Below, piece after piece: positions 1 to 19,571 of a DNA stretch of 64,000 bases. The stretch lies in NCBI RefSeq assembly GCF_000315625.1, contig NW_005434503.1:1-64000 (forward strand), given 5' to 3'. Origin of the DNA: Guillardia theta CCMP2712 (Eukaryota; Protista; Cryptophyta). The number at the start of each line of letters is the position of its first letter. Position 1 is the stretch's first letter. The notes under the pieces are model-generated. The model saw nothing but the letters and a program-made list of their open reading frames with translations. It was not told where the DNA came from and made no database searches. Both the position numbers and the translations under genes were made by a program.

Positions 1-3000
1 GACCTTGTTCCGCCACGAGCGCTGGGTCCCCTCGCAGTTCCGCGTCCTCTAGCTCTCTAACCTTCTGCATTGGGAGATGATCCGTGAGATCACGGTATCC
101 TGCTATCTCCCATGTTGTTTTATCCGATTCTTCTAGTGCTACAATTGCTTTCGTGATTGTGTTTGCAGGTAGCAGTGATAGAAAGATCCAGTCATCTGTC
201 CCTTCTCGCTCGATCCCAATCATCAGTTGCTGGTTTGCACTCCAAAATGCTCTAACGCCCCTCGTGTCTTCGCTAGATAAGGTTGCTTCGATTTGGTTGA
301 TGAGCTCGTCGGCATTGTCGACTATCTTGCCGAGCAGTCGAAGAGCCAAGCCTTTGTGGCAACGAAGGGAGTTAGGGTGTTTTTTCTTGATGTCTTGACT
401 TATCATCGGTTCTTTGGGAATGAAATCATTCTTGCGTCCCATTGCATTCTGGGATTCACGGCTGCCTACCGTGCCTAGCCGTGTTTGCTGCTGTTGGCAG
501 ATCTCTTGGAAAACTTCGTTGTTTTGTTCTTCACATATCGTTCTGAACCTCTCGATCTTAGTTCGCAATTCTCTTTGTAATGTAGCTTCCGTAGGTACAC
601 CAGTCGCTGGGCTTTGCTGTGATGCTTCCCTAAGTTTAGTCCGCAAGTTGCGGATCGATCTCTTCAAATCCATTTGTTCTTTGTTCGAATGTCGCCTCCC
701 TCCCTTTCTGATTTTCACCTCCTTTAGTGGTAGAGAGTTGGCGAGCATCTCACAAATGTTACATTCTTGCGCCTTAGCTCGCATGTCTCGTATGTTTGCA
801 TCTAGTTGTTGCGCCCATTCGATCTTCTTCTCCTCCCACGAATCGCGATCCAGCACCCATCTGCTTTTAGGGGTTTCCCCCTTCTTCTGTCGTGAATTCA
901 TCTGATGCACTTCTACTCGTGGGATTAGCTGCGTCTCCTCGGACGTGAACTTGGTGTGTACTTGCACCACCAGGGCTCTGTGATCAACTGCTCCCCCTAT
1001 CACACAGCCGTCGACCGTCCACGATTGAAGGGAGATGTTTGGAAAGTTGTCCTCGTCACTTGGGGGGTGAATAGCGAGAACTGCGTCGAGTTTGGCTTCT
1101 ATTAGTTCTTGTTTGTACCATGTTGAGAAGGTAAATGTTGTCCCAGTCTCGCTGATCTGTTCATATGAGAGTGTACGGTGTGCGGAAAGGTCTGCCAGGA
1201 ATTTCTCGAATCTCTCATCTGCTTTTGCGGTGATAGATGAGGGGGAATATCCTCTCCGCATTGGTGTTGTTGTGTTGGTTCTTGCTGCATTAAAGTCTCC
1301 GGCTATGATGTGTGTCTCTCTCGTTCCCAGAGCGAGGTGTAGCAGCTCTGCCCACAGTTCCCCTTGCTCTCGAATCGCATTTTCCGCAGGTACCTGATGG
1401 AGGTTTGTGACTAAGAAAGAGTTTTTCCCTGTTCCGACTTTGATCGAAAACACTCGGTTTCGATATTTCTTTTCTTTGTTGCACGCCTGGTGAGCGGCAG
1501 GGGAAGGGGAAGGCGACAGGGCCGCATGTACCAGCGTTACCAACCTCAGGTCTCCTTTCCCCTTCTTCGCATTGATCTTTGCAGGCCCCAGGAAGATTCT
1601 GTAGCAGGCCCAGTTCTCCTTGATCATCTTCCTTAATTTGTTCTCGTCGCGGGCCGAGACCCTTACCTCTTGTAGTAGCACAACCCCAGGTTGGAAGGAC
1701 TGGATTAAGTATGCGAGGATGTGCTTGAGAACAAAGTGATTGCAACCATTCACATTTTGTGAGATGAGGAAACCTGGGTCTGAGCTTTTTCGATGCATCT
1801 GCGCCCAATCATTGCCCCTTTGCTCCTCCTGCCTTTCCCCCCTCCGCTCCTTCCCTCTCTGGGAGGTTTTCTCTCCTGATTGTGCATTCTCCTCCATTTC
1901 CTCACCCAGATGTCTTGGTTGGGGCTTCGTGGAGGTCGCCTGCCGCTGGATTGCGATCGGCTGTACCTCCTCCTCAAGCTTTGTCGTCGAGGTCATCAGC
2001 CGCTGGATTGCGTGTGGCTGTACCTCCTCCTCAAGCTTTGTCGTCGAGGTCATCAGCCGCTGGATTGCGTGTGGCTGTACCTCCTCCTCAAGCTTTGTCG
2101 TCGAGGTCATCAGCCGCTGGATTGCGTTCGGCTGTACCTCCTCCTCCGGCTTTGTCGTCGATGTCAAGTTCTCTTGCACCCTCGCCTCCTTCGGCAGAGA
2201 TCGCAGAATTACCTGGGCCGTTTCCTCCATCTTCTCCAGATGGGTGAGAGCTTCGATCAGTTGTGTTCTGGTTTGCATCAGCCATTCTTGCGGAGGTCTT
2301 AGTCTTGTCCTCGTTTCCATCGTTGCTAGCCAGTCTTGATTTGTCTCGCAGAGCAGTAGGGTGTGAAGGATAGCGAACACTCCGCAGTTGAAGTTATCTT
2401 CCTGTTGGAAGGCTGAGCACCACTTTACCTGCCATGGGGCGTTGGTCTGATCGTCAAAGATGTGTTCGATCACTCCGATTGTCAGCTCAGCCATTTCACT
2501 TGCTCCGTGCTCCCCCGTTGTTGCAAGATTCCTCGCTCCCTCGATCCCTCGTGGGTCCCTCGTTGTGCTCGTTCTGTCCTCGCAGAGAGGGTCCAATATG
2601 TACGCGCATCGCCGATCATATCTTAATGCAATTAGAATCCAGTGGTTGCTGTGGATGATAGTTGGAAACAGGAAGGTGTGTTGCTCATCTCTCAAGCTGC
2701 TGAGGTGAAATCTGTTCCCGACTCTCAAGCGGGACGCCTCGTCTCGCAGACTGGATATTACCCTTGGCAAGAAGATGATGTTCCGCGTTTGCTGGTCCTC
2801 GTGGGCTCTCCCTTTGCGTACCATGTGTATTGCTCGTCCTCCTTGAAGAGCCTTGCTCATCTCATTGAGAGTAACTTCGATCATGTTCTCGCATAAAAAT
2901 CCGCTTACTCCTCGATTGTTCAGGGCAGTGATGCCAAATTCCTTGTCGCCTCGTTTGTCTGACCATGGGATCTCCTCGATCCAATCAAAAAAATACAGTG

Positions 3001-3100
3001 TTCTATCTACATGTTGCGTTTCCTTTGAAACCGTTTCCATCTCCCCCCCTTGCCTACTCCCGGCACTCCCCCCTTCCTCCTCCCTTCCTCCTCCTGTCAT
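1..3100 (-). CDS. Retrotransposon ORF2 (partial, >1030 aa): Ulp1/C48-like cysteine protease, 19-aa repeats, AP endonuclease, long linker
   Basis: Manual translation from ATG 3100 is open to position 2; it is absent from the ORF track because no stop lies in the window. Protease motifs FPTIIHSNHWILIAL..YILDPL..QQEDNFNCGVFAI (~2340-2700). APE motifs ISQNVNG, VVLLQEV, IIAGDFNA, KLDAVL, VDHRAL (~970-1760). Confidence 0.9.
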   Translation of the reverse strand, partial: MTGGGREEEGGSAGSRQGGEMETVSKETQHVDRTLYFFDWIEEIPWSDKRGDKEFGITALNNRGVSGFLCENMIEVTLNEMSKALQGGRAIHMVRKGRAHEDQQTRNIIFLPRVISSLRDEASRLRVGNRFHLSSLRDEQHTFLFPTIIHSNHWILIALRYDRRCAYILDPLCEDRTSTTRDPRGIEGARNLATTGEHGASEMAELTIGVIEHIFDDQTNAPWQVKWCSAFQQEDNFNCGVFAILHTLLLCETNQDWLATMETRTRLRPPQEWLMQTRTQLIEALTHLEKMEETAQVILRSLPKEARVQENLTSTTKPEEEVQPNAIQRLMTSTTKLEEEVQPHAIQRLMTSTTKLEEEVQPHAIQRLMTSTTKLEEEVQPIAIQRQATSTKPQPRHLGEEMEENAQSGEKTSQRGKERRGERQEEQRGNDWAQMHRKSSDPGFLISQNVNGCNHFVLKHILAYLIQSFQPGVVLLQEVRVSARDENKLRKMIKENWACYRIFLGPAKINAKKGKGDLRLVTLVHAALSPSPSPAAHQACNKEKKYRNRVFSIKVGTGKNSFLVTNLHQVPAENAIREQGELWAELLHLALGTRETHIIAGDFNAARTNTTTPMRRGYSPSSITAKADERFEKFLADLSAHRTLSYEQISETGTTFTFSTWYKQELIEAKLDAVLAIHPPSDEDNFPNISLQSWTVDGCVIGGAVDHRALVVQVHTKFTSEETQLIPRVEVHQMNSRQKKGETPKSRWVLDRDSWEEKKIEWAQQLDANIRDMRAKAQECNICEMLANSLPLKEVKIRKGGRRHSNKEQMDLKRSIRNLRTKLREASQQSPATGVPTEATLQRELRTKIERFRTICEEQNNEVFQEICQQQQTRLGTVGSRESQNAMGRKNDFIPKEPMISQDIKKKHPNSLRCHKGLALRLLGKIVDNADELINQIEATLSSEDTRGVRAFWSANQQLMIGIEREGTDDWIFLSLLPANTITKAIVALEESDKTTWEIAGYRDLTDHLPMQKVRELEDAELRGDPALVAEQG
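1942..2162 (-). repeat. 57-bp in-frame tandem repeat (~3.8 copies; TSTTKLEEEVQPHAIQRLM) between protease and endonuclease
   Basis: Unit cgctggattgcgtgtggctgtacctcctcctcaagctttgtcgtcgaggtcatcagc is repeated. Confidence 0.9.
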
Positions 3101-3109
3101 GATTCGGTT

Positions 3110-5221
3110 TTAGAGTTGAGAGGCAACCTCTCCCTCTTGGTTGCCACTCTCCTCTTCCATCTCCAGTCCCATCTCCTCCTCTGCCTTGCTCAAGAGAAAC
3201 TCAATTTCGTCTCCCGAGCCAACGCTGCCTTGATAGGTTAGCGTAGCTGTGGAAACTACTTTATTCAGGGCAAGAAACAAGAGGTCAGTTCGAAATTCTT
3301 TTTGTTGTTTCTCCCCTCCTCTCCCTGTTGCTTTTGCAAAGGCTCCCTGGCGTCTTCTTGATGCTACCGTCTCCCACGCATGCTGCTCGCTTACTCTTGC
3401 AATCTTACTCTTCAAAACTTGCATGTCGTCGTCCTGGGTTGCCGAGGATGATTCCGCCCATTCCTTCAGTGTCGGAAAACATGCATTTCCAGGAGATGAC
3501 AAGCTGTCGTACAGGCCGACGATGGCTCCATCGAGCCTGAGTTTGCAAGCTTGGTTTTCTGCACTCTGTCCCTGGTTGACAGTCTCCTCTAGAACTTTGT
3601 AGATGTCTTCGAGGACCACGTTTGCCTCTGGTTCTGGGATGTTGATCTCATTCTCGATCCGTTCGAGATCTACCTGAGCCCAAAGAGGCTCTGTAGGGGG
3701 TTCTGTAGCGATCGCTTCCCAGATGTTGGCACTGCCTGGCTCTAGGAGAAGAAGTTTCCCTGCCCTGTCCCATGGCGCAAAGGACCTGAGGATGTCAATC
3801 GCCGTTTCTTTTTCTGAGAAGCTGAGCACTAGATGTTCACCGTTCCAGCTGTTGGTCTCGACATCTTCTTTCGAGGAGATCTTGACGATGTGCTCAGCCG
3901 CTGACTCCTTCCAGCTCGCCACGATCCGTCTCAGTCCTCGAATTGTCATGCCCATAGAGAGATCCTCCCCGTCGCAGATCTGTTCAGCTTCCTCTCTGGT
4001 GAACCTTCCCTTCTGTGCTTTACTCTTGACCAGTACCTCATAGGTCACTCTTCGTGGTACTGCTCCTAGCGCGTCGGGCAAGAAGTCCAACCTAATTGGA
4101 TGCTGTCTCGTTACCCTGGTGATTGCACTAACCTGAGTAGTGAACCATTTGAGGATCTTTTCATCTTCCGACATCAGTCCGAGGTGTATGCTTCCTCCAT
4201 TCCTGTCGTCTCCCTCAAACATCCGTAGCGTGGTGCTCAGGACGTCCGTCGAAGAGCATCTCGCAATCCAATCGATCTCTCTTCCTTGTCGTATCTCGTC
4301 CACTCCGGCTGCTGCGAAAGTGCGTTTGTTGGGCTGACCTTGAGGTCTCCTCTTCGTCTTGACCTCTAGCTGCATGCCCGCTTCCGGCTGCACCTCCAAC
4401 ACAGCTATTCCTTGTTGCAGCAGGTGTTGACGATAGATCTCCGTAATCCCAGCTGAGTTCATGCCATTCATCTTGAGGAGGTGAGAGAACTCAGCTAGGG
4501 CCCCCGCCTTGCCAGAGTGCTTATCCTTCTGTGGCCTTATCTTGAAGGAGCAAGGATGCTTCGAATGCGCGTTCACCGCGCGGATCATCTTTCCGTCGAT
4601 CCTGAAGTTCGTCTGTCCTTTCCACAGCAGTTCTGCTGCGTCGTTCAATTGGAGTGTTGCCACGACTGGGATTTCATCCACTGTCGGAATCAAATCTTTC
4701 TTGATCGGGGCTCTCCACGAGATGCATTTCTTGCCCTGCTCCTCGTGCACCAAGAGTCCTTGATCCTTCAACTTCTCACACAGTACCTCAACTTGTTTTA
4801 TGTACTGGGTAGGAACTCCGAGGATAGCCATGGTAATCAGTTTACCACTCTCGGGGGACGCTCCTGAAGCATCGATGCAGGCACTCTTGTCTAGTACCTC
4901 CTGTTTGTCTGCGTTCCATGCAGAGACATACCACGACTGTCCTTCTTCCCCCCATTCTTTGATGGCATCCTCCTGGCTCCTGACTTCAGCATGTTTGCAG
5001 GTCTGTCGAATGGCTTCGGCTAAGGCGTTCATCGAGACTTCCTTGGACTGCAAGGCTCTGCCTGTCCTGCTCTGAGGGTACTGCCTGACGAAGTGTTCCA
5101 ATCTTCGGATCAGCTCTCCTAGCGAAGGTGCTGAAGGCGTCGTGTCCTTGTTTAGGAACTGGGAAACTCGGACACGAGCAATCTGTTTCCTTTCCTCTTT
5201 GGATAGATACCACATGATCAA
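3110..5221 (-). CDS. Retrotransposon ORF1 (703 aa), no recognised domain
   Basis: Long intronless ORF directly upstream of ORF2 and in the same frame. No CCHC knuckle seen. Confidence 0.8.
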   Translation of the reverse strand: MIMWYLSKEERKQIARVRVSQFLNKDTTPSAPSLGELIRRLEHFVRQYPQSRTGRALQSKEVSMNALAEAIRQTCKHAEVRSQEDAIKEWGEEGQSWYVSAWNADKQEVLDKSACIDASGASPESGKLITMAILGVPTQYIKQVEVLCEKLKDQGLLVHEEQGKKCISWRAPIKKDLIPTVDEIPVVATLQLNDAAELLWKGQTNFRIDGKMIRAVNAHSKHPCSFKIRPQKDKHSGKAGALAEFSHLLKMNGMNSAGITEIYRQHLLQQGIAVLEVQPEAGMQLEVKTKRRPQGQPNKRTFAAAGVDEIRQGREIDWIARCSSTDVLSTTLRMFEGDDRNGGSIHLGLMSEDEKILKWFTTQVSAITRVTRQHPIRLDFLPDALGAVPRRVTYEVLVKSKAQKGRFTREEAEQICDGEDLSMGMTIRGLRRIVASWKESAAEHIVKISSKEDVETNSWNGEHLVLSFSEKETAIDILRSFAPWDRAGKLLLLEPGSANIWEAIATEPPTEPLWAQVDLERIENEINIPEPEANVVLEDIYKVLEETVNQGQSAENQACKLRLDGAIVGLYDSLSSPGNACFPTLKEWAESSSATQDDDMQVLKSKIARVSEQHAWETVASRRRQGAFAKATGRGGEKQQKEFRTDLLFLALNKVVSTATLTYQGSVGSGDEIEFLLSKAEEEMGLEMEEESGNQEGEVASQL

Positions 5222-5300
5222 ACAACCGTTTCTGCACAGAAAAATATCCTGTTCAGCACCCTAGCTCGCAGGGATCCCCTCAAACTGCAGGGGAGGAGAG

Positions 5301-5611
5301 CATGTCTGTTACTCCAGCGGCTGTCTGTTACTCCAGCGGTCTGTCTGTTACTCCAGCGGTCTGTCTGTTACTCCAGCGGTCTGTCTGTTACTCCAGCGGT
5401 CTGTCTGTTACTCCAGCGGTCTGTCTGTTACTCCAGCGGTCATGTCTGTTACTCCAGCGGTCTGTCTGTTACTCCAGCGGTCTGTCTGTTACTCCAGCGG
5501 TCTGTCTGTTACTCCAGCGGTCTGTCTGTTACTCCAGCGGTCTGTCTGTTACTCCAGCGGTCTGTCTGTTACTCCAGCGGTCTGTCTGTTACTCCAGCGG
5601 TCTGTCTGTTA
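5301..5611. repeat. 20-bp tandem array (CTGTCTGTTACTCCAGCGGT) ~15 copies in element 5' region
   Basis: Near-perfect direct repeats; CATGTCTG variant at 5301 and 5441. Confidence 0.95.
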
Positions 5612-5676
5612 CAGTATACCAAGCCCTGCTCGCAGCTTCCTCCGGTCCCCTTTCCCTACGCGCCGCGGATGTGCAT

Positions 5677-5776
5677 GCCTCGGGAAGGGGCCCGGTGCCT
5701 CGGGAAGGGGCCCGGTGCCTCGGGAAGGGGCCCGGTGCCTCGGGAAGGGGCCCGGTGCCTCGGGAAGGGGCCCGGT
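5677..5776. repeat. 20-bp tandem array (GCCTCGGGAAGGGGCCCGGT) x5 at element 5' terminus
   Basis: Five perfect copies ending exactly at the telomeric repeat. Confidence 0.95.
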
Positions 5777-5843
5777 CCTAAACCCTAAACCCTAAACCCT
5801 AAACCCTAAACCCTAAACCCTAAACCCTAAACCCTAAACCCTA
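5777..5843. repeat. Telomeric repeat (CCCTAAA)n / (TTTAGGG)n, ~9.5 units
   Basis: Perfect plant/algal-type telomere repeat. The C-strand is on +, so the chromosome end lies toward position 1. Confidence 0.97.
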
Positions 5844-6328
5844 GTAGTAGTAGTAGTAGTAGTAGTCGATTTTATTAGAATGCTAGAGTAGTCGCATCGG
5901 GTACCTTCCCGGTCTAGTCTAGTCTAAATGGGTTCTCACGCTTGGCAGAGCGGCCCTTCTTGGATGGCCCGTTGTGGCATCCAGGGTTCTATCGTTGTTT
6001 CGCTGTTTCTGTTGTTTCCATAGTCCTCAGTTCCGAGCCGCCGGTGCGGCCATGTCTCCTCCGGGCCCGGGTTGACGGTTTCAGTGTAACCGTCCACCTG
6101 TCCAGTTTTTGCGCTAAGTCCATGTCCCTTCCCCGCCTGCCGCCTGTGAAGCTTCCCCGTCAGTCTGTCCTTGTTGACCTTTCCCCTGTCGTCATCCATC
6201 TGTCTCCTGTGTCCTTGCCCCTTCCTTGCCATGTTGGTTGTTTTTCGCCTATGAGGCTTCACCTTCGGTCTGTCCGTTGACCGTTGCCCTTTCGTCTCCC
6301 ATCTGTCTTCTGTGTCCTTGCCCCTTCC
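5842..6328 (-). mobile_element. Probable 5'-truncated retroelement 3' end with AATAAA and (CTA)8 tail, between telomeric repeats
   Basis: Minus strand reads ...AATAAA atcg a(CTA)8 GGGTTTAGGG. Telomere-type repeats lie on both sides. Internal ~30-bp direct repeat at 6196 and 6299. Confidence 0.65.
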
Positions 6329-6365
6329 AAACCCTATACCCTATACCCTAAACCCTATACCCTAA
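6329..6365. repeat. Degenerate telomeric repeats (CCCTATA/CCCTAAA)
   Basis: aaaccctataccctataccctaaaccctataccctaa. Confidence 0.9.
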
Positions 6366-6521
6366 GTCGAGGGGAGCCTCGGAGAGGCAACTCTCCCGAC
6401 CGAGGCTGCCTAAGCCAAGAGAAAATTGCAGAAGCACGGTAGAAAGAAGGAAGAGACCTCAGAAGAAGGGTTAGCATTGTAGGCCGTGTACTCCCAGTGC
6501 TCCGAGCCTCTTTAGACTAGA

Positions 6522-6556
6522 CTAAACACTAAACCCTAACTAAACCCTAATCCCTG
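6522..6556. repeat. Innermost degenerate telomeric repeats
   Basis: ctaaacactaaaccctaactaaaccctaatccctga. Confidence 0.8.
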
Positions 6557-6619
6557 ATTTTTCACAGGAACCACAACCAGGGACGGATCGGACTGGCCAT
6601 ATTTTTTGGCTACGCGAGG

Positions 6620-9330
6620 ATGGGAGGATTGATGGTTATGCTTGTTCTCATAGTCTTTCTTCATCCCAATGAAAAGATCTCTAAGATTCGAAACAGTATC
6701 TGTCAAAAAGCTTATCCGCACTATTTGACACAGAGGCATATTCCGACAAAACCATGTGATGTACTCAAATTCTGGTTCAAAAAAGACTATAGAAAGCTTT
6801 TCAAAGAACTTTGGTTTACAAAAGAAGGAAGTGAAGAAAGACGAATAGCAGACGAGCTGGTGAACTCGACCTTCTTCAGTACTGTGATTCAAGCCGAGCA
6901 GGGTCAACTAGAGATTTGGAAAAGAAGTGCTTCAGATATCACTGCTTTGATTATAGTATTGGATCAATTTTCGAGGCATTGTTACCGTGATGAACATGAC
7001 GACTGGAAAATAAAACGCAACAGTGAGGCTGCTAGGCAATTGTCGATGGATCTGCTATCCAAAAATTGGCTTGAAAAGCTCAAGTATGAAGAACGGGTTT
7101 TTGCAATGATGCCTATAAGACACTCACCTGACCAAGGCTCCTTGAAGCTTCTCATAGATATGACAGAAAAATGGGAAAAGGAAGCAAGAAATGCAAAAGA
7201 TGAGCGATCACTTGAAATCCTTGTTCGATTTAAACGAGCAACTCGTCGGCAACTTGACAACCTGCAAGACAGCCTAAGATATGATGGTGAGTTATTCGAA
7301 TTCAGAGGGTTTGATCCCATTGATCCATCTCAAGCCCTGGAACATCAAGTTTGCAAGACGATAAATTGTTTTCTAGAAACTCATTGCAGCAGTGGCTCAG
7401 TGGTGGTTTCGTTATCGGGAGGCGTAGACTCAATGGTTCTTTGTCAGTGTCTCTGCTACATCAGAGATGTGAAAAGTAAGTCAAGTAAAACAGTCAGGGG
7501 GAAACCTGCATGTGGTGCAAAACAATATTTTCTTCGAAACATATCTGCCGTACACATCAATTATGGAAACAGAAAGGAAAGTTTCGAAGAAGCTCACTTC
7601 CTGCAAAAGTGGTGTCAGCAAAGAAATATTCACTTTCACTTGAAAAATGTCGAAAACCTTACAAGGAATCAAAAAGGAGTAGATCGTTCTGATTACGAAA
7701 TTCAGACACGTGAAATTCGTTTCTCAGCTTATTCGACTGCGCTTTCAGGTTGTTCCATTCTGGTTAGCCCTGAGGTTTAACAAGTTTCGTAAGAAAGCGG
7801 AGCAACGGGGATAATGCTCGGTCATCATCAAGGAGACGTGGAAGAAAATGTCATCTCTAATGTTATGAAAGGAAGTAGCGTCCTTAACCTAGCGGTATAC
7901 GATGCATGGAAACGGAATTGAAGTTCTGACGTGATCCCAGGGAATGAAAGAAGTGCAGTATATGACGCAGTACAGGGTTGAGCTTCAGCGGCCCTTGCTC
8001 TCTTTGCACAAGCATGAAATCTACAATTTCTCAATGACATACGGAGTTCCTTACTTCAAAGATACCACGCCAAGCTGGAGTACTCGAGGAAAATTAAGAG
8101 GGTGTGACCATGCATCCAAGAGCAGACTTCGTTTTACGAATTGATTCTCCAGCGTGCTGATTCCTGTTCTGAAGGACATTTATGGCGACGGTGTAATGTC
8201 GCGGTTGGGTTGAAATATTGGCATATCAACGTTTTTACTGATTGTAAATCTAGGCTTAGCTCGATAGCCAAGGACGCTTATGAGCTTTCATGTCTGGTGC
8301 AGTCTGAGATCTTTGAGACGTTTTGGTCAAGCATTGAGTTTCGAGAGCTAGGAAACAGTTTGAAAATGAGAAACGGCAACCGTAACAAATGTAACAGGTG
8401 CATGGATTGATTGTCAGCCATTCTTGAACAAACCTCCTTATTTCTGGATGGAGGGTAAGAGCGAATCCTTTTGAGCTCTGATAGGGGCATAACACGTGCA
8501 ATTCGATCTATATGCCATCAGCAATTCGATCTATATGCCATCGACTTGGATATAGTACTCCTCGGCCGTCAGCTGTTGATCTCATTCTGAAAAAATTACG
8601 TGAAGCCAAAAGAAACGAACATGGTAAGCTCAGTCAAGCATCTTTCTGTAACGCATTATGTAATTATGTTCAGAATACCACCAAAATCCTCAATCGAGAT
8701 GGATACATGCTCGCCAGGTTCTGGTTTAGATCAAACAACAAGTTTCTGACTTGCTCCGAGACCCTTCAAGTACTTATCAAGGGTTTGAGACTATATTTTT
8801 TGGATGCATCCTTATTGCAACCTTGGCAGTATCCTTGCATGTTGACTTTTGAAAAGCGACTGACATTTGCGCGAGGCCAAATCAAGATATTGAATTTAAA
8901 GTTAACAGGTCAATTGCATTCAGTTTTTCATACCTTGCTTGAGTCAAAGACAGCAAAAGGATCTTTGGAATGTGGGAAGTTGAAATTTCTCAGCTGGAAT
9001 GCAACGATGCAAAGCTACTTTTTATTCAAGAAAAAGTTTCCTTAGAAGAAATTCTCAGGTACAGTCATGACAAGAAATGAACTCTTGAAATTCAAATTTT
9101 CACAGAGGTTCATTCGCGTACATTTTGAGCAGCCATGAGCCTGTATCATTCCAGTACCAGTCAAGCATTGCTGCACTTCGACATGTTGATCCTCAGGTAG
9201 AAACTCAATCTGCAGGATTTCCTCCTAGATCTGATAGCAAGTTGCATAGATTCGATCTTCGCTTCCCCTCATAGGTGTGAAGAAGTCAGAACACTCGAAC
9301 TCTGGAAAGAAAAACCAGAAGGTGACCATT
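6620..9330 (+). CDS. tilS: DUF924-like domain fused to TilS-like (tRNA-Ile lysidine synthase, PP-loop) domain; multi-exon, 3' end approximate
   Basis: N-terminal part: VLKFWF..LWF..ALIIVLDQFSRHCYR..ERVFAMMPIRHS. C-terminal part: VVVSLSGGVDSMVL, HINYGNR, R..RF, LGHHQGDVEEN, RPLL, GVPYFKDTTPSWSTRGKLR. Confidence 0.8.
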
Positions 9331-10564
9331 TGCTGCAACTGCTGCTTCTAATGCATGTTTTTGAAGGATCGTGGTGTCCTGACACATTTTCTGTGCAAAT
9401 ACAGCCTCAAATAGCAAGGCTCTTGTTGCTATCATTAGAATTCTATATGTGGGTACAATTTTGCTTTAAGCATGGTAAAAGAAGACGAAGATTTAGGGAA
9501 TTGATCGGGATCGTGTAAAACGATTATCGAGGCTTTGGTAGGCCAGTAGTCCATGGATGACGACTGTTGTTCGGCAGCATTACAAAGCTCCCCCATTTTT
9601 GAAGAGGTCCTTTGCAACCGTCTTCCACCTTTTCTACTTGTGTTGGCTCTTTGCCGAGAACTATCCAGACTAGCATAACTGTTAGAAACAAAATTTGGAG
9701 AAATCTGTTTGGATGTAACAGTAAAGCAATCATCTGATTTCTGTATGCTCCACCCAATTTGAGGCTGCTTGGAGAAAGCGGTACCATGATTGATCAAGCT
9801 GCTTGAAGCCAGAATGGGACTTTTCGGCAACGCGGAAACAATCGAAAACGGAAAGACGTAAAAGAGAAAAACTGCACAAAAGTCGAGCATCTCTCAGCAA
9901 TACGTAACAGCAGTGATATGATGAAGGGCAATGGTTTCCAGCTCGTCAGGATCAAATAAAACACATAGTCGAGCGTTCCAAAAATAGCTACCAAAGAGAC
10001 GCAAGAAAGATCCTGAATCAGAGGTTCAGGGTTTGGGTCGAGATCAGAAAGAAGACCGGGAAAGCAAATTTGATTCGAACATTAAGAATCATAATGCCAA
10101 ACAAGCTGTCCACGTGAAGAATGCAGTTGTCTCTACAAGATCGGGGGAGAGAAGATCGCAACGTAAAGCACTGGTTCCATGGAAAGGATCCTAAAGAACG
10201 CCACCTGGTGGGAGTAGGTGGGTTGTTATTTCTATGGGTACATTTTTTAACTTCGAATTTGACGATTAATTTTAAATTTGTGACCAGAACGAAAAGAAAT
10301 TTTATTGAGTCTTGAAGGGGGTAGGGGTACGTTATGATGTCCTCGTGCAAGGACTTGCAGGAGATTGTTACGAGATATTTCTGGACCGGAACGGTTAAAA
10401 AGCAGATTGGTATCTGCAATGAACAGGTTCTTTTTCAAGAAAACAATATTTTTATATATTGCCTCAAGATCCATGGAGATCCATCCGCTATTATCAGTAG
10501 TAGTAAAAGAAATCATCTCGATCACTACAACCAGGTGAACTTTACTCAACAATGCCATTGAACA

Positions 10565-12021
10565 TCAAATCGGGCAATCCGCCAAAAAGCATGGTTCAGG
10601 CACTCCAGACACACCTTCGTAAAACATCAATACAATGTGCAATTTAGACTCAAAGCTTGTAAAACGAAGCACTTTAGGATAAGCTCACCTTCGGGAAGTT
10701 TTACTGCCCAGAGTTGCCCTGCTCCTGGTTGCTCTTTTCGCTTGAAAAGATCATCAAAACTCCTGATTTCAGCATCAAAGCAGACAAACCTCTTCCTCGC
10801 TCAGCCGATGCCTTGCCGTAGTTATGTAAAGAACGCCATCCCCGATCGCACAAGATGTTGGGTTGTTAAATGGGAGATTGATCTGCACAATGATCCATTC
10901 TTACAGAAAAAAAACAAGGAGGTACTAATCAATCCAACCTCATAATCGACAGCACCATCTTCAGGTCTGTGTCGAACAACCTACGTGTGCATTTCACAGT
11001 CACACCAAAAGAAAAAAATAACATAAAAAACAAAAACACGCTCGGGCACCTTCCAATTTCCAGCCTGTGCCTCCCATAGTCCTCCTTGGTTGTCAACAGT
11101 CGCTCCGTCCGGGCCTCCTTTTTCATCCTGGCGTAAAAGAACTGAATACAAATTGAACGGCTTATCATGATTAAACCTCCGACATCTTCCAGAACGACAC
11201 TTTGTTTCTGAGTTTATCATTCGGTGAATAGTCAAATCGGAAGATCTCCTGCGTCGGTGTATCACAAAAATACATCTTGTCACCTACAAATAAAATTATG
11301 CATTGCAAGGGAATCACGAGATCACCCTCAGCGCTAAATGCGATGGTATTGGAGCATCGAAAACGATAATCGAGGATCTCCTCAAGCTCGAGGGTCTGTG
11401 CATTTAATCTCCACAAACCAGCGATGTTTTTCTTGTCTTGACGATGGTTGTTATTGTATGAACCAATCACAAAGTTTCCCTATTACAAATAAATAAGTTT
11501 TTCAAAAGCAATCGTGGTTGAAATACCTCGCGGTCGCATTTACCGTCGTTGGGTCTTGTTGGGAGCCCCTCTTCGTATGGACAGATGAGCCTTCTCTCGC
11601 TGGTTTCAAGGTTGTACCATGACAACCCGCTAGCAAAACCCATCAAGAACCCGCCAGATTTGGTGAATGCAAAGCTGCCTGCAACCTCAGGTAGATCCCA
11701 ACTCTTATAATCTTGAGAGTTTGGGTGATATCTGCACATCTTCTTGCCATTTATGTCAAGCCAGTATAAAGCCTTCTGCTCCTCGTGCCACATCGGAGCT
11801 TCACCGAGTAAATTGTCACATCGAACAACCTCTTCTGCTTGAAGTTGAGTGATTCCTCCGCCCCGGATCCTCAGCACCTCCAAGCTACCACCAACCCGAT
11901 ACGGCATGAAAGAAGCTAGCGATTTCAAGCCTCGACTTGGCGAGTGCGATGCTCCCATCATCGAGCCGCATGCATATCCCATGGCCGCGAACAAGGCCAT
12001 TATGCCTAGCGGGGAGGCCAT
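10565..12021 (-). CDS. SMP-30/gluconolactonase/regucalcin family protein with signal peptide; multi-exon
   Basis: LGEAPMW..LYWLDI, RPNDGKCD, SNTIAFS, MYFCDT, PDGATVDNQGGLW, NPTSCAIG..LYITTAR. Confidence 0.9.
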
Positions 12022-13031
12022 CAGGCTCTATGCTGGGCTCTATGGCTGAGCCAGCGCGATAGCTAGCGAGAGCGGCGCTGCTAGCGTGAAAATCAGCCCG
12101 CCTTGACTGCGAGACTTGCAGGCATGACCATTCCTCTGAGGATTCTTCAGTCAAAAATGACTGAAAATCAGTATCACAACACAAGACTGTGAATAAAGGT
12201 ACAACCGATATTCCCTGCAAACATGATGAGTCACACATGTACCACCCACTCAACATGACCCCCACCAACAGCATTTTCCTCGTACCCATCTGAGAGACCA
12301 GAGCGGTACCCCTCCTTCGAGACTTGATTTCGCATCATACCCCTATTGTCTATTGACCCTACCCCATAATTCCAATCACGGCTAGTAACTAATCTAGGCG
12401 AAAATGGCTTGCAGGGCTTCACAGACCGGAAGGACATATCTACTTCACCAGCTTGTCCAACTCAGAATTCTTGTTCTAGGATGTTAGATCAATTTCATTT
12501 TTACATCCACGCTCACGCCCTTCATATTCTATCAAATATTTGCTTTTGCAGCCATCATTCCGCTCCTTGTTCTCTCCACCCTGATGTTCAACTTTTGCTC
12601 GCAGAATCTCTCGATGTATTTTAGTGTCCTCCGCGATCTGCAGTTTTCCACTACGGACCTCTCTTTTGATGACGTGAATGTCCTTCATTTAGGTGTTTTC
12701 CTGATGTTGTTGGTTTTTCTACCTTGTATCGTTGTGCTTTTTTTCTGCCTAGGAGTGTCTAGATTGTTTGGCCTTACAGTTTGAATCATATAATGATCTT
12801 CGAAAGTGTTGTAGAGCTATCTCTACTTGTCTGTCCAAAAATATTCTAATTCTTTGCTGTTGAACTTTAGAACAGGAAACTCCAGGAAAAGATCACCGAG
12901 GGTATTTCTTTTCTATTTGCTCGTCAACTTCGATCGAATCATTGGTATCTTGGCCCTGTGCGATCTGAATCCTTCTTCGCACAGGGCACCAATTGGACAT
13001 ATATCTTTTTATTACTCGGATCAAAGCCAAA

Positions 13032-15325
13032 ATGACCATAACAGCAGCCGAATACTCCCTGTATCTATTCTTCTTTAGCTGGTGCTGGCTTTCAGTTGCT
13101 GTCAGTGCTTTCACGGATGTGTTTGTGTTCGCAAAAGAAAGAAGAGACATTCTGACGGCTACTGAAGAATTCCGGTTAAACCCTTCAACAAGGGCGGCAG
13201 TGTACAGCTCATTTTATCTGGGTTGGTTGTTCGGGGACCCATTCTTCGGATGGATAGCTGACAAATGGGGAAGGCAAGTTATGCTGCGCACTCCTCTCAG
13301 TTTGTCATTGAAGTGATAGGCATCCTTCTGTCTACATTGCAACAGCGCTTGGCCTTATTTTTCAAGCATCATGTGCGTTGGCTGTCGGTCCATATTCTTT
13401 GTTCTCCCTGCGCCTTTTTGCAGGAGTTTGCATGGTAATTGCCTTCGTATGAGTCAACTATGTCCTACATACCTAGTCTGAATCGATTCCTTTTGCCAGG
13501 GCGGTGCAGATTTGGTTGCTTATGTACACTGTATCGAACTTTCAGGAGTGCAACAGCGAGCAACGAGCGGATCAGTGATGCAGGTTACTTGATTCTCCAT
13601 ACAAAATAACAGGGGGCATATCTGAACACTGTATAAATTAGTGTTTCTTTGCCTGCGGCTTGTGCTTAGCAGCATCTTTTGCTGTAGTATTCCCAGATTG
13701 GCGCCAAGTAAGTCCATTTCTGCTGCTGCTACATGATTGTTGACAACAATGTACAGCTGTATTTCGTTGCAGCTCTGCCCACAGCACTTTTCATAGTGCT
13801 ATTCATCATTCAGCGTTCATCAATCACTTATTGATTTGCATCAGATTTCATGGTGGTGGATTCCGGAATCACCCAAATGGCTAGCAAATCAATTGAGTAA
13901 TATATTACTTGAATCCAATCTTTTACTTTGATTTTTGCTTTCCTCCATTTAATAGAGCAAACAGGGAGTGGGAAACTGAAGGGCGGAGAAAAGTTGCAAC
14001 ATTCTGTGAGATTATCATGTTTTCTCAAATAATTTCTTTTGGATCAAGTTACTTGTAATTCATTTCAAACAGAAAGCTGAGACTGCTGATCAGCACAGAG
14101 CTTTGCTTCATGTTACGGTGAAATTGTTCACGATATCATGTGTCATAATAGTAGATTGACGCTTCACTTGTCATTAACAGGAGGAAGCTGGACAAGTTGT
14201 TGGTGATGGTGGTAGTGAGGATGAGAAGGGACACAGAAATCAAACAGAAAACGGGGACAAAGAGTTCACGTACAGCATGCTTTTGAAGGCAAGTTATTTT
14301 GGGATGGATACTTCCAAGTCATGCCATTGCAGGATTCGGATACAAGTCAGCTGCTCATGACTGTCTGAAAACAAAATTTCTTAGACGTGCGTGATATGAT
14401 GCAGGTATGTGTAGTCTGGCTTATTGGAGGATTTGTGTATTATGGAATTACTCTGAGTGCCGGGAGCATTTCTAAGGAGGTAAATGAAAAATTTTCTGTT
14501 CTACAATCTCAAAATTCATAGATACACTTGAACATGTTCCTTATGGGCCTGGTTGAAATTCCTGCCTACGTGCTTTCGAGGTCAAACCATTCCTTCTGTG
14601 TACATACCTTTACGAAATTTCTCAAGGTACCTCGCGGACACAGCGGGAAGAAAATCTTCTTATATCAGTCTTACGCTCTTGGCTGGTAGAGCAGAGAACT
14701 TTGTGACTGACTTAACAATGATCTTTTTTCAAGCATTCTTCTGTCTGGTTTCCTGGTCGTATCCCCGAAAAGGAGGGAGATTACTATTTGCGCTTGTTGG
14801 GAAGATCTTTGTTAGCTCATGCAGTTAGTCTGGCATGTGTTAACACCACTTCAGGCTTCTGGCGCTTTTTCATTGGTGTGGATGTGGTCGCCTGAGATTT
14901 TTCCGACAGGTGCAAGGTAATTTCAGGACTCAGATGTTTATGAAGCTTAGATTTCTTCAGGTCCTTAACGACTGCGATTGGGAGCCAAGCAGCACGTGTT
15001 GGGTCCATCCTCGCACCATACGTTCGACACAGCGGAAGACATTTGAACACTCTTTCTAATACAAAAATTCAGGTTGTTGTTCTCATGTCTGAAATGGAGA
15101 GCACAGTCGACGGCTCAGGTTGCATACTTGATGCAATTCCATGTGCACGCAGGGTAAAAATCAATGCAGGAGTGAGTCATCCACCTCTGCCCCAACCGGT
15201 TTCATTGAATTCTTTCCGCACATTGATTCATTTAAAACAATTTGCAGATATTTGCTGCCGTTGGCTGCATCAGTGCGCTGGTTGCATGCTTCCTTCCCGA
15301 AACAGTCGGGGTGGAAATGATATAA
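13032..15325 (+). CDS. MFS transporter, SLC22/organic cation transporter-like; many short introns
   Basis: GWIADKWGR, PESPKWL, YYGITL, GLVEIPAY, DTAGRK, EIFPT, AARVGSILAPY, LPET. Confidence 0.88.
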
Positions 15326-15905
15326 ACATTCAGTCTCCAAGAATTGGCCAGCCTTACTTGGAGTCAAACTCAACGGCGTACTCGCAGCGGGAGATCACTT
15401 AGTTCAATCATTATGTTGTCAGGAAAGGGCTTTTCGGCGGTGGCGCACAGTCGCTTCAGTGATAATGGCCTCTGACAAATATGCTCCGGCCAAGTGATGG
15501 TCCGCAGTCACTGTTGACACACCACACGGTGCTTTGTAAGGCCGCTCGACTGGCGAGCTGTGTGGGCCATCCCACAAATCTAAGAATGTTGGCTGGCACG
15601 CAGCCCGCCGCCAGTCACGATAGCCAACCAGTAAGTTGAGTCACTTGCACGACCATCCTGTGCTGGAGTACTTGTGTACGTCAACGTCCGCGGTCCATGT
15701 TTGACTAGATCTCGCCATACCTTGATTAGACCGAATCCTATGGCCTTGGCTATGGCTTTTGGCCAAGGAACCAGTGCCGAGTGGGGAAGCAGGCGGCCCA
15801 AAAACCGTCCGGGATTGAATCATACACGTTGGTTGATCCATGAGTCGAAAAGAATATACTGAGGGAAAAAAAGTCTTTGGAGTCCTGCTGTTCTTTAACA
15901 GTTTC

Positions 15906-17126
15906 TTACGCTATTTCTCGCCGTCTTTCAATCCTAGCTTGGAAGGGTCGAAACTCAGATGCTAGCAGCCTCTTTGAAATTTTTTGCCGAAGTTTGATGA
16001 AGTGGAGCAAGATAGCATATCCCTTGCGATTCACCAACAAGAACTGTCGAAGCTCCGTCATGGACATGCATTCTAAAATTTGAGCAAGAACACCCCCTGG
16101 AAGGTGATCACATAATCTGCATCCCGAAGCTTGAAGCTGACTGACAAAGGTTTCTGTCTGAGAAATCAAATATGTCCTAAGTTGCTCATGTGTGCACAAA
16201 ACATATTCCTTTCTCGCAAATGCACGCACCATACATTCTGCCATGCAAATTGCGTTCTCAGAGCTCTCCTGGACTGTCTTGAAGCACACTAAATGTAGTT
16301 CTGTTTCCATGGATGAGAATTTGGCTTCTTTGTTAAAAAAAAGGGATCTGACATTATCCACTAGCCTTGGATCTAGCCTGCCGCGACTGAGACTGCATAA
16401 TACTTCAAGTTTCAATTTCTTCTTGTTGAGAGACATCCGGTTGGACCGCTTATGGCACTCACAATCAATCCAAGATCTCAGAAAGGATTGAAAAAGATTG
16501 AATTTGTCATGATCAGTCTGAGATACAATGTTTTCATGACAAAAGTGAATTGTTTTGATGAAAGGATTGCATCCTCCCTCGAGCAGATCAAAAATGAGGT
16601 CTGCTGAAGTACACGGAGGTAAAATACTCAGAACATTGGTATCCTGACCACCAGTTAGCGGACTAAGGCGAGGAAGAGATTCGTTGGGATCCGCGCCTTC
16701 ATCTAAAAGCCTTTTAATGATTGTGGTTGTGTGGTTGTTGAGGAGCAGACTCTGAGTATCTCGGTAAACGCAACATGCAGCAAGGTGAAGGACGCTTCCG
16801 ATTTCCCTTCCTTGCTTCGACAAGTCAAGCGTATACCAAACCTTGTTATTCTCATTCTCAGCTTCTGCAAAAAATTTGTGATACTTAAAAAAACATTCGA
16901 CGATTGAGGAATCTTTTTGAAGAATAGCCATTGCAAGAGCAGATGTTCCAGCTGATTCACAAATTACATTAGGGTTCGCGTTGCACCTCAAGAGTGCCTC
17001 GACTTCTTCCAGTTTACCATCGATCACAGCTTGATGAAGAGGTAATCTAGAGCGGTATTGTACCTTTTGTATAGCATTTCGAGGTCGTTGGGTTCCAGGA
17101 AGCACTAAGTCGAATGTTCTTACCAT
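15906..17126 (-). CDS. Intronless ankyrin-repeat protein with C-terminal F-box-like motif (406 aa)
   Basis: PLHQAVIDGKLEEVEALLRCNANPN, SVLHLAA, LLDEGADPN; C-terminal DHLPGGVLAQILECMSMTELRQF. Confidence 0.8.
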   Translation of the reverse strand: MVRTFDLVLPGTQRPRNAIQKVQYRSRLPLHQAVIDGKLEEVEALLRCNANPNVICESAGTSALAMAILQKDSSIVECFFKYHKFFAEAENENNKVWYTLDLSKQGREIGSVLHLAACCVYRDTQSLLLNNHTTTIIKRLLDEGADPNESLPRLSPLTGGQDTNVLSILPPCTSADLIFDLLEGGCNPFIKTIHFCHENIVSQTDHDKFNLFQSFLRSWIDCECHKRSNRMSLNKKKLKLEVLCSLSRGRLDPRLVDNVRSLFFNKEAKFSSMETELHLVCFKTVQESSENAICMAECMVRAFARKEYVLCTHEQLRTYLISQTETFVSQLQASGCRLCDHLPGGVLAQILECMSMTELRQFLLVNRKGYAILLHFIKLRQKISKRLLASEFRPFQARIERRREIA

Positions 17127-18019
17127 GCCTGTGTCAACGTATTGTTGAGAGACGTGGATTTGACCAGGATCGGATGTTCCAAGATGAATTCAAGCCAGGA
17201 CTTCGAACTATCTCTTCATAACACACCTGATAATAACATTTTCAGAGTGCATTCATGTTATATCAAACCAGAAAATTGATCAAAGACAATTGAACATTGT
17301 TCACAATCATTTTGACGCTTCCATTTCTTTCGTGAGATTCCTACAAGGTGAAATGCTTGATCTCGTTGCTGCTTTCATAGCTCTCTCGTTGTATCTTTTG
17401 CTTTCTCGTTTTATCTTCTTCCCTTTACCAACCTTAACCTCTCCCTATCCTTCCATTCCCGTCCTTCGAAAGTCTCGATGACTCTTGCCCTCTTGGGGCT
17501 CCGATCCGCCTTCCCACCCCGAGACCCTACCCTTCCCCTTCGAATACCCCTCTATCAATCATCATACCTTACTCATTTGAAATTTTATTTCAAGAATACT
17601 AGGCTGAGACTTGAAATCTTCCAATAGGATTATAAATTATGAGATTTTATTTCACAGTACCCATCTCCTACATCACTCAAACCTTGAGTCGCAATTGACC
17701 TTCACCCCCTACCCCCACAGATTTCGGATCGTTGCGGTATTGCGCCGCCCTACAGATCCTCGTGCCCTATACTACACCCCGACGACATAAATACAACCCC
17801 TACACCACCCCCGGGAAAATATGTAGTGAGTACCCCACCCTCCTCCTTCATAGCGACTATGTTCCGATTCCGGGCTGTCTTTCTTTTTTTGGTTGGTCCC
17901 TGAAAACACACGAAATCAGGGACAGAACAGCCTCAAGAGTCGTTCGGCACCTCGGGTCGTTTCGAATGAGAGGGGAAGGGTGGGCACCGGCAGAAGCACG
18001 ATCACATTGATCCCGGATA

Positions 18020-18960
18020 AGATCAGACTGTCACGGTCCGGCCGGGCCGCCGGGGCTCAGCGTCGATCGGCGCGGCCCGGCCGCCGGCGGACTCCCGACC
18101 GTCCACTCTGAGCCTTTACTCAAAGTTAAGTTAAAAATCAGTACGAGGACAATCAGGAGAGTCGAGGAGGCTTGCCCCTGACACTGTCGCACAGGCCAAA
18201 CGGCGAGACTTGAAGAGAAAAGACAGCGAGAACCAAACCGTCCAATCCTGCCAACTGCTGTCCCCCAAACTTAACTGATACCTTCACTTAACTGCGCGCT
18301 GGACAAGAGCCCGGCCGCCGGGGGCCGGGGCCCACTGAGCCGGGCCCGAGCGGCAGGGCCCCCGGATGCACGGTCAGCCGTGCGACCGTCTTCACTGACT
18401 CCGGGAGCCTCAGCGGGAGTCTGACGCCGGTCCGGCCGGGGCCACGGCGGCCGCCGGTACCGTCGTACCGACCCGGGCCGGCGGACTCCGGGACCCGGGG
18501 TCGGATCCCCGGGGCCGGCCCGCCGCACCGGGTACGGTCGGACGCCACCGTGGCACTGGGCAACGGTCGGCGACCCGGCGGTCCGCCGGACCCGTCCGGA
18601 GAGTCCGACCGTACTCGCCGTGCGTGCCAGACGGTGGGCCGCACGCCGGGGCCGCCGGGCCGGGGGGCCCCTGCGCGGCCGCTGAGAGTCCCGAGTACCG
18701 GGTCCGCGGCCGCCCGGGCCCGGCGGCGGCTGTGCGGCAGTGCCGCTGTGCGGCAGTCACCGGTGACCGGGCCGGGCCCGGGCCCACGGCTCACGGCGGG
18801 TCCGATCACCGGCGGATTTCGTCGGAGTGCAACTCCGACACTGGCAGGCTGAGTCAGTGCCCGGCCGCCCCGGGGCGCGGGCCGGCGGCTCAGTGCCCCG
18901 GGGGCGGGGGCCGGGGCCGCCGGGCCGGTCCGATCACCGGTCACTGAACCGGGAACGGTC
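18020..18960. other. GC-rich intergenic island (CCGG/GGCC word-rich); similar islands at ~22780-22870, 37700-38470, 41100-41830, 47195-47540, 54860-55330
   Basis: Abrupt GC rise and a low-complexity vocabulary (ccgg, ggcc, cggtac, tcagtg). No credible protein. Confidence 0.8.
18112..18197 (+). repeat. Dispersed ~85-bp repeat, cleanest copy (others 41896-41966 +, 54813-54849 -, 54998-55120 +, degenerate 54760-54790 -)
   Basis: Shared core TTTACTCAAAGTTAAGTTAAAAATCAGTACGAGGACAATCAGGAGAG..GAGGAGGCTT..CTGTCGCACAGGCC. Confidence 0.85.
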
Positions 18961-19112
18961 AATTAATTTTTTTCGGCTAAAAAACTTTGAAGGCTCTATA
19001 AAGAGAGACTTGAAAATCAAGTTGTATCGGACTGGAAATTTTGACAGATGATGACCGATCGAAGGCTGACCGTCTGAGAGAGCAACGGGGGCCGGGCCGG
19101 GAGGGGGGGGGC

Positions 19113-19179
19113 AGACAACAGACAGACAGACAGACAGACCGTACAGACAGTGACCGTACTGAGACAGTGAGAGGCGCGG

Positions 19180-19278
<99 letters not shown>

Positions 19279-19515
19279 CCGGGCAGTGAAAGGAAGTGAG
19301 AGGCACTGACAGACAGACAGACAGACAGGCACGCAGACAGGCAGGCAGGCAGGCAGCCTGCAGGCAGGCAGGCAGGCAGGCAGACAGACAGACAGGCACT
19401 GGCAGGGCGACTGACTCACTGACTGAGAGAGATAGACTGAGACTGAGACTGAGTGAAAGAAGGACAGAGACGGTGACATACGCAGTGAGATAGAGACAGA
19501 GACAGAGACAGAGAT
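19113..19515. repeat. Compound microsatellite (CAGA)n/(GCAG)n/(GAGACA)n
   Basis: Direct observation. Confidence 0.95.
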
Positions 19516-19571
19516 TTTCGCACAAGCATTAATAGAAACTGATTATTTGTTCAGAGTGGGATACATTTCAC

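Follow-up and report, generated by a model that had tools for sequence, protein, structure and literature searches.

A probable Dualen-type retrotransposon carrying a Ulp1-like protease domain in the telomere repeats of the cryptophyte Guillardia theta

The stretch of DNA analysed here, called the window below, is the first 64 kb of the Guillardia theta CCMP2712 contig NW_005434503.1 (positions 1 to 64,000; contig C171 in our numbering), in an assembly of 87.1 Mb and 669 contigs. It begins with an array of retrotransposons at a chromosome end, where elements lie head-to-tail with short TTTAGGG tracts between them. Of the outermost one, a full-length young copy read from the minus strand, the window holds the proximal 5.8 kb. 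Very probably, this copy belongs to a cryptophyte family of the Dualen (RandI) type, which would have reached the telomeric array by SART1-like insertion.

The second open reading frame (ORF2) of this copy starts at ATG 3100 and stays open to the window edge, as the original prediction had it, over 1,033 codons. Translation and comparison with full copies assign positions 39-3100 to the first ~1,020 of ~2,504 codons. These comprise a Ulp1-like protease (MEROPS C48, clan CE; ~aa 40-290, 2231-2983), a 19-aa repeat linker encoded by 4.2 units of a 57-bp tandem repeat detected by Tandem Repeats Finder (TRF; 1927-2166), an apurinic/apyrimidinic endonuclease (APE; ~aa 440-716, 953-1783) and the region preceding the reverse transcriptase (RT). 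Bases 1-38 are contig-end sequence foreign to the element, replacing the continuation of ORF2. Other genomic copies align from base 39 only, and contigs of the public runs X1, X2 and X4 show a different continuation before this base, encoding HTRFFFSVNA like the full copies. Since both the copies and the public-run contigs continue ORF2 past base 39, the contig end interrupts the element, which is not short by itself. The lack of RT motifs within the window, correctly remarked before, is due solely to this interruption: in full copies the RVT_1 domain starts at aa 1169.

The first open reading frame (ORF1; 3113-5215, minus strand, from the list of open reading frames) encodes ~701 aa from ATG 5215. 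It is in the same frame as ORF2, its TAA stop (3110-3112) being followed by 9 nt and then by the ORF2 ATG, so that stop and spacer occupy 3101-3112. Domain searches with ORF1 gave only a sub-threshold ZapD match in Pfam and no usable match in ESM Atlas, so that no domain is recognized in it. Upstream, still on the minus strand, lie the unique part of the 5′ untranslated region (UTR), an 87-nt leader (5216-5302), then 15.5 copies of a 20-bp unit (sense AGACAGACCGCTGGAGTAAC; 5303-5612), an extra 164-nt segment private to the window copy (5613-5776) and a perfect (TTTAGGG)9.6 tract (5777-5843). The latter reads (CCTAAAC)9.6 on the plus strand and thus TTTAGGG on the element sense strand, directly 5′ of the element, with seven overlapping 14-mer matches against zero expected; the fusion of the 5′ end to perfect repeats in the G-strand sense had been rightly recognized. 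This tract separates two elements and served as target of the full-length copy.

The second element, proximal to the tract and in the same orientation, is a 5′-truncated copy. Its (CTA)8 3′ tail (5843-5866) is joined to GGGTTTAGGG, as established in the junction survey, and what remains of it is the 3′ UTR alone, with 103-bp repeats and AATAAA (5867-6330). This piece is 94% identical to the sequence past the ORF2 stop in the copy of contig C176, and over 274 bp it is 91-100% identical to 3′ ends found in further copies. Degenerate telomere repeats (TATAGGG, TTTAGGG; 6331-6364, minus strand, TRF) border it on the proximal side.

Other genomic copies give access to the whole element. They measure ~10.5 kb, with an ORF1 of ~700 aa and an ORF2 of ~2,504 aa, and end in a 3′ UTR of ~0.5 kb, itself with 103-bp repeats and AATAAA, whose terminus reads ...AATAAAATCGA(CTA)n. 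ORF2 is open over 2,482-2,506 codons on contigs C64, C176, C15 and C7, and the window ORF2 shares 95-100% nucleotide identity with 11 other copies; the copies are therefore young. The order of domains in ORF2 is C48 protease, APE, RT, a degenerate RNase H-like region, a CCHC finger and an R2-type restriction-like endonuclease (RLE). The 57-bp linker repeat differs in unit number among copies, and one run contig skips one unit.

Only two full-length relatives were found, P0009 and P0010, 44% identical in ORF2. They are encoded on the metagenome contigs L049 and L050, which come from two different JGI samples and carry complete elements of the same build, with an ORF1 of 712-713 aa, 37-38% identical to that of G. 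theta, and an ORF2 of 2,573-2,575 aa. The 19-aa repeat linker is not conserved in either of them. In both, the ORF1 stop and the ORF2 start overlap as TAATG (L049:2249-2255; L050:2439-2445). Kojima et al. reportedly described in 2005 that overlapping stop and start codons, UAAUG, couple the two ORFs of SART1, and the arrangement in L049 and L050 is the same.

The unique leader 5216-5302 was probed in 20 copies: its identity is 94.9% in that of C176 and 98.7-100% in the other 19. The 20-bp array upstream forms the element 5′ terminus in most copies, with <1 to >40 units. They might act as promoter monomers, or might stem from slippage of the RT at the 5′ end of the RNA. The L049 element likewise begins with two 20-bp units, of different sequence. 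The private segment 5613-5776 of the window copy consists of 65 unique nt and five copies of another 20-bp unit (ACCGGGCCCCTTCCCGAGGC). In the genome match search, the window copy alone matches beyond query base 613, and bases 5615-5691 match ~14 other sites at 82-90% identity (mostly ~89%), at coordinates that mostly suggest contig ends. With a segment so similar to the 5′ ends of another telomeric family, the window copy has a chimeric 5′ end, which looks as if template switching between the RNAs of two elements, or insertion into the 5′ end of another element, had produced it. The private segment meets the usual 20-bp array at a GTAAC microhomology.

The complete APE domain announced by the original prediction was confirmed by Pfam Exo_endo_phos (34.9 bits for a cut-off of 24.5 bits; aa 447-633 of the window ORF2), and its catalytic residues N449, E478, D602, N604, D706 and H707 are all present and invariant in the homologues. 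In full copies RVT_1 matches aa 1169-1422 with an E-value of 1e-34, with FADD at 1343-1346, and the best PDB sequence match of the RT is R2, slightly above L1 ORF2p. Further downstream, the CCHC finger CCx2Cx8Hx4C (C2302/C2303, C2306, H2315, C2320) is invariant in three sequences at 44% identity. IPDG (2378-2381, PD at 2379-2380) and E2395, 15 residues on, are also invariant, and lysines 2415 and 2419 are conserved. This CCHC-IPDG-Glu-Lys pattern is that of a predicted R2-type RLE, of the PD-(D/E)XK kind. When a model of the C-terminal 474 aa was compared with 48,161 PDB chains, R2Tg (Z 10.0 over 170 residues) and R2Bm (Z 9.2) came out best, the matched regions being their C-terminal endonuclease regions, and further PD-(D/E)XK nucleases came next. 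Three results speak against this assignment: the model is poor (pLDDT 44.7), Foldseek returned nothing for it at E ≤ 0.001 (best R2Tg, 8.8e-3), and a profile of the same 474 aa retrieved from the PDB sequences a single chance-level match and no R2. Even with these reservations, APE, RT, CCHC finger and RLE are all recognized in the full copies.

Between RT and CCHC finger, the predicted succession of secondary structures is beta-beta-beta-alpha-beta-alpha and gives a weak match to RNase H1 (4e19, Z 5.6); this region had no Pfam match. Read from the alignment, the positions of the RNase H catalytic Asp, Glu and Asp hold other residues in all three homologues, and the region is probably inactive.

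The N-terminal domain required a closer look. The C48-type set of His, Asp, Gln and Cys reported by the original prediction is intact: His153 lies in NHWIL (2642-2644), Asp170 in ILDPL (2591-2593), Gln232/Gln233 at 2402-2407 and Cys239 in the FNCG of QQEDNFNCG (2384-2386). On the other hand, Pfam Peptidase_C48, with a gathering cut-off of 20.7 bits, gives the 1,033 aa of the window only 13.1 bits, and the first 300 aa of ORF2 from C176 19.3 bits, both of which count against a protease. As these scores fall under the cut-off, the call was tested in four other ways. The full-length homologues P0009 and P0010 score above it, with 26.5 and 37.6 bits. A phmmer search with the N-terminal 287 aa in 1.84 billion representatives found only eight short relatives, four of which (P0004, P0005, P0006 and P0008) pass Pfam C48 with 22-36 bits; a word-index search brought up no full-length protein with the ORF2 N-terminus. 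Compared with all PDB sequences, the domain profile matched CE-clan proteases exclusively (Ulp1, SENP, ChlaDub), among them a Chaetomium Ulp1-like protein (6dg4, 1.4e-4), yeast Ulp1 (1euv, 9e-4), ChlaDub, SENP1, SENP2 and SENP5, and His, Asp, Gln and Cys align on the Ulp1 residues with the Ulp1-like spacing QQxxxxxCG. Finally, the best 48 Foldseek PDB matches of an AF2 model all belong to the CE clan (Ulp1, SENP, NEDP1, XopD, NopD and others; E 2e-6 to 9.5e-4).

Could this domain be an inactive relic, or a module that binds SUMO or ubiquitin-like proteins rather than a working protease? The middling confidence of the model (pLDDT 60.8), like the low Pfam score of the window copy, would be in line with such a fate, and the neighbouring RNase H-like region without catalytic residues shows that domain decay does occur in the ORF2 protein. 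We nevertheless regard it as unlikely, because none of His, Asp, Gln and Cys varies, either in the full-length homologues (44% identity) or in those short metagenomic ones which cover them, and because their spacing matches that of Ulp1. The domain looks catalytically competent, and its catalytic residues appear from this conservation to be kept under long-term selection. The predicted protease would most likely either cleave the large ORF2 protein into working parts or strip SUMO or ubiquitin-like modifiers from host proteins. Polyprotein processing and deSUMOylation of telomeric or silencing factors, as proposed by the original prediction, are likewise conjectures. The residues GGG at positions 3-5 of ORF2 (window numbering; G6-G8 of the alignment) are invariant in all three homologues. 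A protease directed at Gly-Gly might cleave at this N-terminal GGG.

The genomic distribution of the near-full copies is that of a telomeric element. TTTAGGG is the inferred ancestral telomere type of cryptomonads (PMC3622300). All 12 near-full ORF2 matches lie ≤16 kb from a contig end; with 669 contigs in 87 Mb, ~25% of random sites would be so near an end, hence 12 out of 12 is not chance. The sense strand points outward in 11 of these copies, those of left and right ends having opposite orientations. The 13 independent sequenced 3′ ends all read (CTA)4-11::GGGTTTAGGG (the double colon marks the junction), and one phase of seven found thirteen times is not chance either. Among 13 exact 3′ termini genome-wide, nine are directly at that junction and two more are so with point changes. 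At the other extremity, 14 of 18 5′ ends read TTTAGG::AG(G/A)CCGCTGGAGTAACAGAC, running straight into the 20-bp unit. Insertion specific to TTTAGGG repeats, with fixed phase and orientation, is thus strongly supported.

Arrays of this kind may also spread by subtelomeric recombination or segmental duplication, in which case the element itself would have no target specificity. Sequence exchange is common among subtelomeres, and over 3 kb the identity between copies from separate ends reaches 100%. Yet (CTA)n length, 5′ unit number and the length of the flanking tract differ from copy to copy, with one constant junction phase, and the 5′-truncated copy of the window has repeats on both flanks; such private tails, private unit numbers and 5′ truncation point to retrotransposition and not to block duplication. 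Distant relatives from other samples moreover present the same junctions. We therefore rejected spread purely by recombination, on account of the tails and unit numbers proper to each copy, and consider recombination without target specificity a very improbable origin of the arrays.

The relatives allow this comparison to be extended beyond G. theta. The 5′ junction of L050 reads TTTAGG::AAGGTTC, while the L049 sequence begins within 20-bp 5′ units of its own; both have (ATA)n::GGGTTTAGGG as 3′ junction, in the same phase as the G. theta family. That relatives only 44% identical share this phase makes targeting a property of the lineage.

A few copies weigh against strict telomeric insertion in one orientation. 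One near-full copy, on C176, points inward. The orientation or place of three exact 3′ termini (C8, C26, C134) is uncertain. Several shorter fragments of lower identity (72-94%) lie at possibly internal coordinates, so that the telomeric location expected of the copies held for the 12 near-full ones at contig ends and is less certain for some fragments.

The C176 copy itself (9000-20100; L035/L019) has an open ORF2 of 2,504 codons and is directed inward, the nearest contig end lying behind it. A 3′-broken, ORF1-bearing element of another family capped by telomere repeats precedes it, and the copy is itself broken in the 3′ UTR and joined to unrelated sequence. Scaffold misjoining or an old rearrangement, perhaps end to end, may account for this arrangement.

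The genome also holds a second C48-bearing family of ~20 copies, with a protease region 32-36% identical (e.g. C181:7379, C141:6847, C23:3515, C159:130917). On the minus strand, eleven of its matches have coordinates <17 kb, a position suggestive of left-end copies that point outward.

Another way to colonize chromosome ends is the endonuclease-free attachment to naked ends, as for HeT-A/TART or the endonuclease-minus (EN-minus) Penelope-like elements, telomerase adding repeats later. Arrays at chromosome ends with short repeat tracts separating the elements would be expected from it, and on C176 the upstream element of another family, 3′-broken and repeat-capped, indicates that erosion and healing occur. 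However, priming by the G-strand overhang would place the 3′ end centromere-ward and the sense on the C-strand, the opposite of what is found in 11 of the 12 copies. Both nucleases also retain their catalytic residues, and the 3′ junction phase is fixed. HeT-A-like end attachment was rejected for its wrong orientation, and we hold endonuclease-free attachment in general to be extremely improbable.

Target-primed insertion into the repeats accommodates these features better. The sense strand being the G-strand and the 5′ end being proximal, the orientation fits target-primed reverse transcription from a C-strand nick, as in silkworm SART1. In the scheme that we propose, one nuclease would nick duplex telomere repeats on their C-rich strand, at or beside CCC^TAAA; the nick could lie two bases further if the RNA-terminal UA pairs with the target. 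The freed 3′ OH would then prime reverse transcription from the (CUA)n end of the RNA, and pairing with read-through telomeric RNA may aid this priming. The 5′ end would be joined at TTTAGG::AGG, probably through AGG microhomology after a cut of the G-strand, perhaps by the second nuclease. The expected outcome would be an element whose sense is the G-strand, with its 5′ end toward the centromere and its 3′ end outward. For the division of labour between the nucleases, our working guess would be one strand each. The target appears duplicated by 2 bp modulo 7, beyond which a repeat allows no resolution.

As for the family to which the element belongs, the domain content is not new. Lescot et al. 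(2015) reconstructed cryptophyte Dualen elements from transcriptomes and called their configuration unique to cryptophyte Dualen (PMC5029228). Their Dualen-1_GCr carries SET, C48 peptidase, APE, RT, RNase H, CCHC and RLE, a related 2,543-aa ORF comes from Tara Oceans, and the cryptophyte elements are deposited in Repbase as Dualen (PMC5029228). Together with Dualen-1_GCr, Dualen-5_CCu and the Tara ORF, the G. theta family has in common C48, APE, RT, RNase H-like region, CCHC and RLE in one giant ORF, a cryptophyte host and, for the Tara ORF, a nearby ORF2 length. It differs from them by the absence of SET, by a separate ORF1 and by an RNase H-like region without catalytic acidic residues. The original prediction hesitated between a new family and a telomere-specialised Dualen. 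The latter is favoured by APE, RT, CCHC, RLE and the fixed junctions, whereas a new architecture had to be rejected, the combination of C48, APE, RT, RNase H, CCHC and RLE having been published in 2015 (PMC5029228); a described family of identical architecture was among the grounds for refutation which the original prediction had named.

The Dualen assignment rests on domain content and on similar published cryptophyte elements, a point against it. The searches yielded two full-length relatives only, and an RT matching R2 slightly better than L1 ORF2p fits any early-branching position. The family might be a separate lineage that combined APE and RLE independently, or a deep sister of Dualen. 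We find this quite unlikely, as Lescot et al. placed in Dualen cryptophyte elements of like layout and like length (2,543-aa ORF) (PMC5029228).

The telomere habit of cryptophyte Dualen appears to be unreported. The main text of Lescot et al. does not mention TTTAGGG insertion, its sole match to 'telomer' concerning PIF1 (PMC5029228). More broadly, we found no report of telomere targeting in Dualen or in cryptophytes in that main text or in the accessible parts of the cryptophyte genome papers, the Chlamydomonas papers and reviews of target specificity; the founding Dualen paper or Repbase may mention it.

Comparison with other systems situates the element further. The Chlamydomonas Dualen/RandI elements share APE and RLE, the defining trait, as well as RNase H, as summarised in PMC4640811 and PMC5029228; their copies in Chlamydomonas are reported in centromeric clusters of transposable elements, not at telomeres. 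Bombyx mori SART1 and TRAS1, of the R1 clade, are specific for telomere repeats, have one orientation and two ORFs, and the sense strand of SART1 is likewise the G-strand. In contrast to the G. theta family, they use APE alone, without protease or RLE, end in a poly(A) tail instead of (CTA)n, and belong to an unrelated clade in an animal host with TTAGG repeats. The start of their reverse transcription depends on the RNA 3′ end (PMC7265360). An N-terminal Ulp1-like protease is found in the nematode RLE elements NeSL-1 and Utopia-1_TSP (PMC4640811), which differ in lacking APE and in targeting spliced-leader or U2 snRNA genes rather than telomeres.

Transcript evidence is scarce. Raw RNA reads (6% of the one true RNA run) cover only three patches with opposite strand signs, too little to claim a full-length sense transcript, and the other public runs may be DNA. 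In the window, 74 nt with GT..AG bounds (95-168, plus strand) are skipped in contigs of two runs and in one raw RNA read. The skipped stretch has a pyrimidine-rich 3′ end, and no genomic copy without these bases was seen. This skip suggests a spliced transcript antisense to ORF2. Abundant spliced antisense RNA is also a feature of TART, with which this antisense GT..AG splice can be compared.

The remaining features are on the proximal side of the array. A 3′-region fragment of another telomeric element lies there on the plus strand, inverted with respect to the array (6365-6520). It was recognized by its match to L050: window positions 6413-6521 (plus strand) are 87% identical to L050:1-105, an element 3′ end upstream of a telomere tract. 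This level is reached although the coding regions are ~65% alike. The inverted piece is flanked by degenerate telomere repeats, the innermost of which (6521-6555, minus strand), delimited by TRF and the list of open reading frames, mark the boundary to unique host sequence; a host ORF begins at 6620, beyond them. Rfam gave no match in window positions 1-7000.

Head-to-tail arrays of retrotransposons at chromosome ends are known for HeT-A, TART, TAHRE and the MoTeR of Magnaporthe, and MoTeRs insert into telomere repeats. The Drosophila elements HeT-A, TART and TAHRE have their 3′ end centromere-ward and substitute for telomerase repeats. None of the four is known to have two nucleases or a C48 protease, and telomere-specific retrotransposons are known from only few lineages: SART/TRAS, HeT-A/TART, MoTeR, Giardia and EN-minus Penelope-like elements. 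It is tempting to see in the protease and the two nucleases adaptations to telomeric chromatin, C48 opening the target by stripping SUMO or ubiquitin-like marks from silencing or telomere-bound proteins, APE and RLE cutting one strand of the TTTAGGG duplex each, and the element and ORF1-only partner families buffering or maintaining cryptophyte ends beside telomerase; we advance this only as a speculative possibility, which we think unlikely to hold as a whole.

Dualen is generally ranked after the old RLE and before the younger APE elements. Since this family has two intact-looking nucleases and a target that is short, repetitive and known, the assignment of each strand cut to one of the nucleases becomes testable in it. 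The conserved N-terminal Ulp1-like protease lets one ask whether retrotransposons manipulate SUMO or process themselves, and terminal arrays of this kind would account for many assembly contigs stopping short of the true telomere. The junction phase shared with relatives at 44% identity implies that the telomere habit would be old and lineage-wide, and not a recent accident. A telomere-specific Dualen branch in a secondary-plastid alga would represent an additional independent origin of telomere targeting.

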